Source of the DNA: Bugula neritina
Taxonomy: Eukaryota; Animalia; Bryozoa
Direction of reading: 5' to 3'
Length of the DNA: 64,000 nucleotides
NCBI GenBank assembly: GCA_964035545.1
Contig: OZ037771.1
Location: forward strand, 7,287,190-7,351,189
Shown piece by piece: positions 62,353 to 63,694 of the stretch. The notes below the pieces were generated by a model, which was not told the DNA's origin, ran no database searches, and worked only from the letters and a program-made list of their open reading frames with translations. The position numbers were made by a program, and so were the translations under genes. How positions within the stretch are numbered: the stretch's first letter is position 1; the number at the start of each line of letters is the position of its first letter.

Positions 62353-63694
62353 ATGAAAGTTCAGATTACTTTGTTCATACATGCTCTGCTCTTTGGGGGA
62401 GCTCTATCACACTCCTGGATAGCATGCACTGACTATCTCCAGGAAAACGGTTAGTAGCTTTGTAAAATTTTTGTGTGTTTCAATGATTTTGCAAAAATAC
62501 AAAATGTTTTTTTACAATTGCTATTATTGCTATCAAATGAAAAACTTGACAGCAGTGAATACAGTGGGATAAACTAAGGGTTGATATTTTTAAGGTGATT
62601 ATTGGAGCTCTTCGCTGTGCAGGGCATATGCAAGACATGGACATCAATTTACACCAAAAGACAGTAAGTTCATTTATATATTGTAACTTGAATTGTTTGA
62701 TTTTAGCTCTACTATAAATATTTAGAAAGCATAATATTATAGCTTGCTGTAGAGTTATATAATACTTTTATTTGTAGTCTAAACATAATTTACTTCAACA
62801 AATGATAGCATATTTATCAAGCATCAATCTGTATGATATAACAATATTCTGGTCATAGTATATTATATAACTCAAACTATTGTTGAAAAATGAATTTTTT
62901 ATTACCAGGTAAATAATTATGCTTTTAAATTTTATATCAAAGCTTTTCATTATGGTGACCAATCTATCATGCCGTGAAATATGCACTTTAACTATTGCAT
63001 AATGTTACACAGACTTTGGCATTGACACTGGTTATGACTACAATGGACTGTCAGAGAATAAGCCTTGTAAGACTGTGAGAGACGATAACAGTGCCTACAA
63101 CTCAGAGTATCCTATGGCAGTATATTATGCTGGACAGAAAGTGGTCATTGCTCACCCCACCAAGGTATGCTTCTAATACAGAGTAGAAATATATATATAT
63201 ATATATATATATATATATATATATATATATATATATATATATATATATATATATATATATATATATATATATATATATATATATATATATTTATATATAT
63301 ATACATATATATATATATATATATACATATATATATATATATATATATTTATATATATATATTCATTTTCTATGTAATAATATTATAGCTCAATAACATA
63401 GCAGAATGTTTTGCTGTTTCGGATGTGCTTCATTGAATTGATTTTATTTTTAGCAAAGTTTAGTAAAATATTAAGTCATTTATATATTATGAGTATTCAG
63501 GTACGCGCAAAACATAGTGCATAGAATATTGGTTCTACTTATTGCCACTCAACTACCCCTGCTGTGTTATGTTCTAGAATCACGTGGCTGAGACATGCAC
63601 TAACAAATATATACCAGACTCTGGGAGTGAAGTTTTCATTAGTCAAGTCAACCCCTCAAAAGATCCAAAACTGTCCGAGTTTAGATCCCGTTTG
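62353..63694 (+). CDS. Secreted protein with N-terminal His, LPMO-like histidine-brace candidate (3' end outside window)
   Basis: Exons 62353-62449, 62595-62663, 63013-63164, 63578-63694, GT-AG, intron phases 1/1/0/0. Translation: [19 protein letters not shown]|[126 protein letters not shown]. The gene model is strong; the LPMO call is inference. Confidence 0.8.
63189..63361. repeat. (TA)n microsatellite
   Basis: Directly visible. Confidence 0.95.

Follow-up and report, generated by a model that had tools for sequence, protein, structure and literature searches.

The 64,000-nucleotide stretch of Bugula neritina DNA analysed here (hereafter "the window") carries close to its 3' end the first part of an intact gene that comprises seven exons and encodes a protein of 313 aa. 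The window itself holds the ATG at 62353 and four stop-free exons with AG/GT ends and compatible phases (1,1,0,0), and DNA fetched past its end supplied three further exons in which the predicted axial Tyr197 is encoded (residue numbers refer to the mature protein). Positions below are those of the window or, where marked L002, of a fetched segment whose base 1 is window position 62000.

62280..62285, plus strand: TATAAA box, 73 nt upstream of the ATG (consensus match only)
62353..62449, plus strand: exon 1, with the 19-aa signal peptide (62353-62409), the mature N-terminus H-S-W-I-A-C-T-D-Y and the His1 codon (62410-62412)
62595..62663, plus strand: exon 2, with Cys22 and Arg27
63013..63164, plus strand: exon 3, with an F-G-x-D-x-G motif, Cys55, a Y-x-x-G-Q strand and the His84 codon (63153-63155)
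63190..63362, no strand: (TA)n microsatellite within intron 3, non-protein, read directly
63578..63694, plus strand: exon 4, with Asn88, the brace His89 (63581-63583), Cys94 and the invariant Asp101 (63617-63619)
63695..64000, plus strand: intron 4, which crosses the window end
L002 2327-2486, plus strand: exon 5, with the motif Y-P-K-P-G-Y-Q-N-A-P-K-F-C, Gln153 and Cys159
L002 3204-3344, plus strand: exon 6, with a W-x-W-x-F strand and D-D-Y197-T-S-C200, which includes the predicted axial Tyr197
L002 4052-4257, plus strand: exon 7, with the Pro/Thr linker, a C-x3-C-x3-C-x2-C tail and the stop codon
L002 4420, plus strand: AATAAA poly(A) signal

An initial annotation of the window had proposed a four-exon ORF whose signal peptide ends in A-L-S and places a His at mature position 1, with a second His at mature position 89 and four Cys, and had advised recovering the exons downstream. 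Each of these points is borne out by the extended gene: the 19-residue leader, with a mean Kyte-Doolittle value of 1.9, is hydrophobic, ends in A-L-S and is followed by His as residue 20, while His89 and the four Cys encoded in the window (mature 6, 22, 55 and 94) are read from the exons, and the three downstream exons are followed by the AATAAA signal. A chance exon pattern is ruled out by a homologue from the bryozoan Watersipora (P0059), with which each exon aligns collinearly and all six introns agree in position and phase. In order, the product consists of the signal peptide, a domain of about 210 aa that contains His1, His89 and Tyr197, a Pro/Thr linker and a short Cys tail, and carries no recognisable CBM. 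We found no paralogues in the 216-Mb assembly of the Bugula neritina genome, in which the gene is thus single-copy.

The absence of the gene from the ORF track could suggest a silent or degenerate gene or an assembly contaminant, a reading that we consider highly implausible given seven open exons with canonical splice sites, TATA and poly(A) signals, the six introns shared with Watersipora, and a location next to a UBE2K-like gene on a 15.8-Mb contig. This downstream neighbour lies on the minus strand (L002:6130-7985) and was recognised by eye, from its translated exons, as similar to the ubiquitin-conjugating enzyme UBE2K/E2-25K. Upstream of the gene, short GC-rich inverted-repeat-like motifs at window positions 60714-60764, 61445-61500 and 61650-61680 are possibly the ends of a small non-autonomous transposon.

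For homology searches the gene was queried exon by exon. Exon 3 alone retrieved full-length relatives from Watersipora, Lingula, Owenia, Branchiostoma, Styela, Phallusia and Oikopleura, nearly all of which bear "uncharacterized" as their database name; the animals named here are all suspension or mucus-net feeders, and annelids and tunicates are among them. The closest homologue, Watersipora P0059, is 59-82% identical per exon across the catalytic domain, has identical numbering and ends in the same Cys tail. This C-x3-C-x3-C(-x2-C) tail is common to the bryozoan proteins (L002:4225-4257 in this gene; the C-termini of P0030 and P0059), has no Pfam match and is possibly a small binding or cross-linking module. 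A profile search gave 185 matches (120 listed) and added oomycetes (Saprolegnia, Achlya, Aphanomyces, Thraustotheca, Pythium and Albugo), Naegleria, Willaertia, the alga Phaeothamnion, amoebozoans and the vampyrellid Leptophrys, whereas a pattern-based search of limited sensitivity found no bacterial or archaeal members. The oomycete and marine-invertebrate relatives mentioned in the initial annotation are borne out by the exon 3 and profile searches, though the tunicate that it had considered as a possible host gives way to a bryozoan in light of the nearest homologues and the six-intron pattern.

Family members also occur on giant-virus contigs. On the NCLDV-type contig L013, a member at 10001-10738 lies 5.5 kb from the major capsid gene with three genes in between, and on both this contig and L011, likewise NCLDV-type, members are found near RNR and dUTPase genes; L011 apparently has two tandem copies (6690-7382 and 7475-8554), the second of which is of the same length as P0169 and starts with Gln, not His. 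On a 244-kb IMG/VR contig (L014, 58-1545 and 2905-3861), a member with a C-terminal CBM1 has a GH6 cellulase gene (E 4e-81) roughly 1.4 kb away, and the two may form a viral pair for attack on cellulose.

Two introns, one just 5' of Asn88-His89 (phase 0) and one at Gly180 (phase 1), are common to bryozoans, Lingula, Styela and Branchiostoma, and the gene was therefore most likely present in the ancestor of protostomes and deuterostomes. Owenia P0060 is without both of them and the Oikopleura gene is intron-free. In our tree, which is unrooted, thinly sampled and includes 71 unlabelled rows, the named animal sequences lie together on one side of a branch supported at 100/99, and viral sequences are placed among oomycete and environmental ones. 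Recent horizontal transfer into this lineage, for which the initial annotation had proposed a phylogenetic check, is ruled out by this animal branch together with the common introns, and the latter indicate vertical inheritance within Bilateria instead. Deeper in time, both inheritance from a eukaryotic ancestor and an old transfer are compatible with this unrooted, thinly sampled tree.

The residues expected to form a copper site are conserved across the family. Across 116 members, His1 is kept in 99% and His89 in 100%, as the initial annotation would have it, and the axial residue that it had placed past the window is predicted to be Tyr197 in exon 6, the equivalent of which is Tyr or Phe in 116/116 (Y 86%, F 14%), an exchange resembling that between known LPMO families. 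An expanded Branchiostoma subclade (P0070-P0086) has Phe in place of the axial Tyr, is without the C-terminal module described below and may be functionally distinct. Also invariant are Trp3, Cys6, Tyr9, Cys22, Cys55, Tyr74, Asp101, both Trp in the penultimate strand and the final Cys, and Gln153 is 97% conserved. Judged by rule and conservation, the leader should be cleaved directly before His1: it has A-x-S at -3/-1 in this gene, 106 leaders in the family have a median length of 18 residues with A/G/S/C at -1 in 94%, and the first residue after the leader is His in 62/62 first matches. We tried His84 (of "AHPTK") as an alternative brace ligand and rejected it because it is His in 43/43 animal-clade sequences but Trp or Tyr in 69/73 others, the protist sequences among them.

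The second coordination sphere, by contrast, departs from what is known. Known LPMOs have Gln, Glu or Asn two residues before the axial aromatic (PMC5320794), whereas this gene has Asp195 there (D-D-Y) and Lys87 two before His89. Among the 116 members, the residue at the former position is D in 64, E in 15, S in 8, Q, N and A in 7 each, so that Q/E/N are found in only 29/116. Asp101 sits immediately ahead of the strand after the His89 loop (104-108 in the P0059 model) and is, because of this location, probably near the metal.

With P0059 as a stand-in for the fold, AlphaFold2 was run on the mature domain of this homologue and gave a model with pLDDT 96.1 and pTM 0.92. When compared with 48,161 solved chains, all 21 matches with Z>=8 have the LPMO fold and align from residue 1, and in a second structural comparison the best 50 chains are all LPMO-fold as well, in line with the beta-sandwich that the initial annotation had predicted. 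Sequence identity to the structural matches is 6-17%, and with Z-scores of 11.0-11.4 for AA10, 9.9-10.4 for AA11, 10.0 for AA15, 9.9 for AA13, 9.1 for AA9 and 8.9 for X325, the modelled fold appears roughly equidistant from these families (Z 9-11); fusolin (8.9), AA16 (7.9) and AA14 (7.6) are at the lower end. Among predicted structures, unnamed LPMO-like clusters from Mucoromycota come closest (TM 0.73 and 0.67), followed by DUF7492 (0.63), and clusters of LPMO_10 and AA9 reach 0.55-0.56.

Several members carry domains linked to polysaccharides. CBM1 is fused to P0179 (Leptophrys), P0159 and the viral member, CBM2 is found on Branchiostoma P0091, Pro/Thr linkers occur throughout the family, and some members have membrane-anchor-like C-terminal tails. 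Many animal members, and P0013, P0024, P0025, P0060, P0063 and P0067 in particular, share a beta-rich C-terminal module of about 100 aa that reaches CBM2-level scores only in some Branchiostoma copies; in Lingula and Owenia members a TSP1 domain is inserted N-terminal to it. For the members concerned, the CBM1 and CBM2 fusions and the GH6 neighbour point to cellulose as the putative substrate, while closeness to AA11 and the four to five chitin-synthase-like loci of the Bugula genome keep chitin open as a candidate.

We therefore favour, as a probable if not firmly secured reading, that the gene encodes a secreted mono-copper LPMO of an undescribed family that cuts cellulose or chitin. Cleavage at A-L-S|H would free the amine of His1, which together with its imidazole and that of His89 would hold a single Cu on the face of the LPMO beta-sandwich, with Tyr197 in axial position. 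By analogy with LPMO chemistry, the reduced Cu(I) and H2O2 or O2 would then bring about a hydroxylation that breaks glycosidic bonds in an insoluble beta-1,4-glycan, which might come from algal walls that this suspension feeder ingests or from its own chitinous matrix. What Gln/Glu does in the second sphere would probably be taken over by another residue, for which Asp101 and Gln153 are candidates. A broader proposition, in which the balance of our judgement is even, is that of an active LPMO family outside AA9-AA17 that is ancestral to protostomes and deuterostomes, has been retained by suspension feeders, among them invertebrate chordates, is common to protists and giant viruses, and performs LPMO chemistry without Gln/Glu-x-Tyr.

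Against a cutting enzyme speak the missing canonical Q/E-x-Y/F motif, the membrane-anchor-like tails of some members and the lack of a recognisable CBM in this gene. The missing motif leaves room, as the initial annotation had allowed, for an LPMO-fold copper protein that does not cut, be it a carrier or buffer similar to X325/Bim1, in which the fourth ligand would be Asp101 or Asp195, or an oxidase that makes H2O2, as has been reported for AA16. The invariance of Asp101, which could be a fourth Cu ligand, and the presence of X325 and AA16 among the structural matches would fit, and inactive LPMO-fold His-brace proteins are known from X325/Bim1, in which Asp is the fourth Cu ligand (PMC10952591, PMC7924993). 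We nevertheless regard this alternative as unlikely, if by no means negligible: the axial Tyr/Phe is invariant, the domain of about 210 aa has long loops as opposed to 150 aa in X325, fusions to CBM1 and CBM2 occur repeatedly beside a GH6 neighbour, and the Asp two positions ahead of the Tyr, which only 55% of members have, is unlikely to be an obligatory ligand.

If the favoured reading of a polysaccharide-cutting LPMO is true, the family would be a second ancient LPMO family of animals, reaching amphioxus and tunicates, next to AA15 as, to our knowledge, the only characterised one. Marine filter feeders would then have oxidative cleavage of polysaccharides among their means of digestion or matrix remodelling, and so would the protists and giant viruses that attack walled cells. 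Because its second sphere is unusual, the family lends itself to testing which features distinguish catalytic LPMOs from inert His-brace proteins, and an assay would be informative whichever way it turned out. Some members have a single domain and no introns and are simple to express.

Compared with known systems, the family appears to belong to no characterised LPMO family and to be apparently undescribed. It seems improbable to us that it instead diverged within a known CAZy family (AA11, or AA17 via the oomycetes) or has already been curated elsewhere. The chitin-active AA11 (AoAA11, AfAA11A/B) provides the sole PDB sequence match at useful E-values (1e-4 to 6e-3), and a tunicate-wide eggNOG group named "LPMO" (PMC8704543) is possibly, though not necessarily, this family. 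However, the AA11 match spans only the last ~45 residues, over which the W-x-W strand, Tyr140 and the next Cys align, and the Z-score of about 10 is no better than those of AA10, AA15 and AA13. The family profile puts the axial Tyr on AoAA11 Tyr140 (E 1e-4), and a weak, sub-threshold alignment puts His89 on His60. In AA11 these two residues are the axial Tyr and the second brace His. Apart from this correspondence, the proteins are only 13-17% identical without full-length similarity, the present family is ~60 residues longer and mostly has D-x-Y where AA11 has E-x-Y, the AA11 motif H-G-G-G-S-C is absent, and His2 and Tyr lie at 89/197 rather than 60/140. With the family profile, no AA15 or X325 chain was found in the PDB at E<=10, nor any of AA9, AA10, AA13, AA14, AA16 or AA17 except for one AA10 fragment at 0.5, and Pfam AA9 and LPMO_10 scored below cut-off. 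An "AA11-like" protein of Orciraptor was rejected as a member because of its His63/Tyr135, and AA18 was set aside as the family, since its CelOCE enzyme, reportedly presented by Santos et al. in 2025, is said to have another fold.

Full-text searches, with most subscription journals outside their scope, found no published study of the family. The initial annotation's notion of an uncharacterised family holds to this extent, but it is qualified by borderline matches to DUF7492 and by automatic UniProt names of some members ("chitin-binding type-4 domain-containing"), which imply that the resemblance had already been caught by machines.

Like this family, AA15 occurs across animals, oomycetes and large DNA viruses (PMC5823890, PMC10952591). 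AA15 proteins are similarly secreted, with His1, a His around position 90, an axial Tyr and the same fold (5msz), yet identity is 12%, where an AA15 protein would be expected to share 20-30% with AA10-like LPMOs, and the H-G-x-L/M-x-x-P start, the Ala two before His2 and the E-x-F/Y motif of AA15 are not found in this gene. LPMO_10 misses the gene and touches only 2/96 members in a Pfam scan even at E<=0.1, and we thus rejected an identity as ordinary AA15. Apart from this gene, the genome has one of ordinary AA15 type on a different contig (L010, G000:C4:2370302-2374081), which was found by LPMO_10 and shows an H-G-Y-M start, T-A-Y-H and E-E-F-I-S-C; a profile comparison of the family with its exons was not significant. 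The atypical start pointed out in the initial annotation, H-S-W, is accordingly joined by Lys87 and D-x-Y in setting the gene apart from AA15.

AA10 has the top Z-scores, with an rmsd of ~3 Å over 141-144 residues and an identity of 6-15%. X325/Bim1 shares the LPMO fold and the His brace (6ibh), and the conserved Asp could act alike, but identity is 13%, its domain is smaller at ~150 aa, CBM fusions occur in the present family, and no BIM1-like Pfam match was found in 96 members. To Pfam DUF7492 (PF24320), 68/96 members have borderline, partial matches at E<=0.1: P0059 scores 30.2 bits (gathering cut-off 27) and several animal members also pass, while the oomycete members tested score below the cut-off and the Bugula gene, scanned exon by exon, reaches E 0.095. 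DUF7492, on which the literature search yielded no paper, is mostly ascomycete and uncharacterised, and is best read as a sister family.
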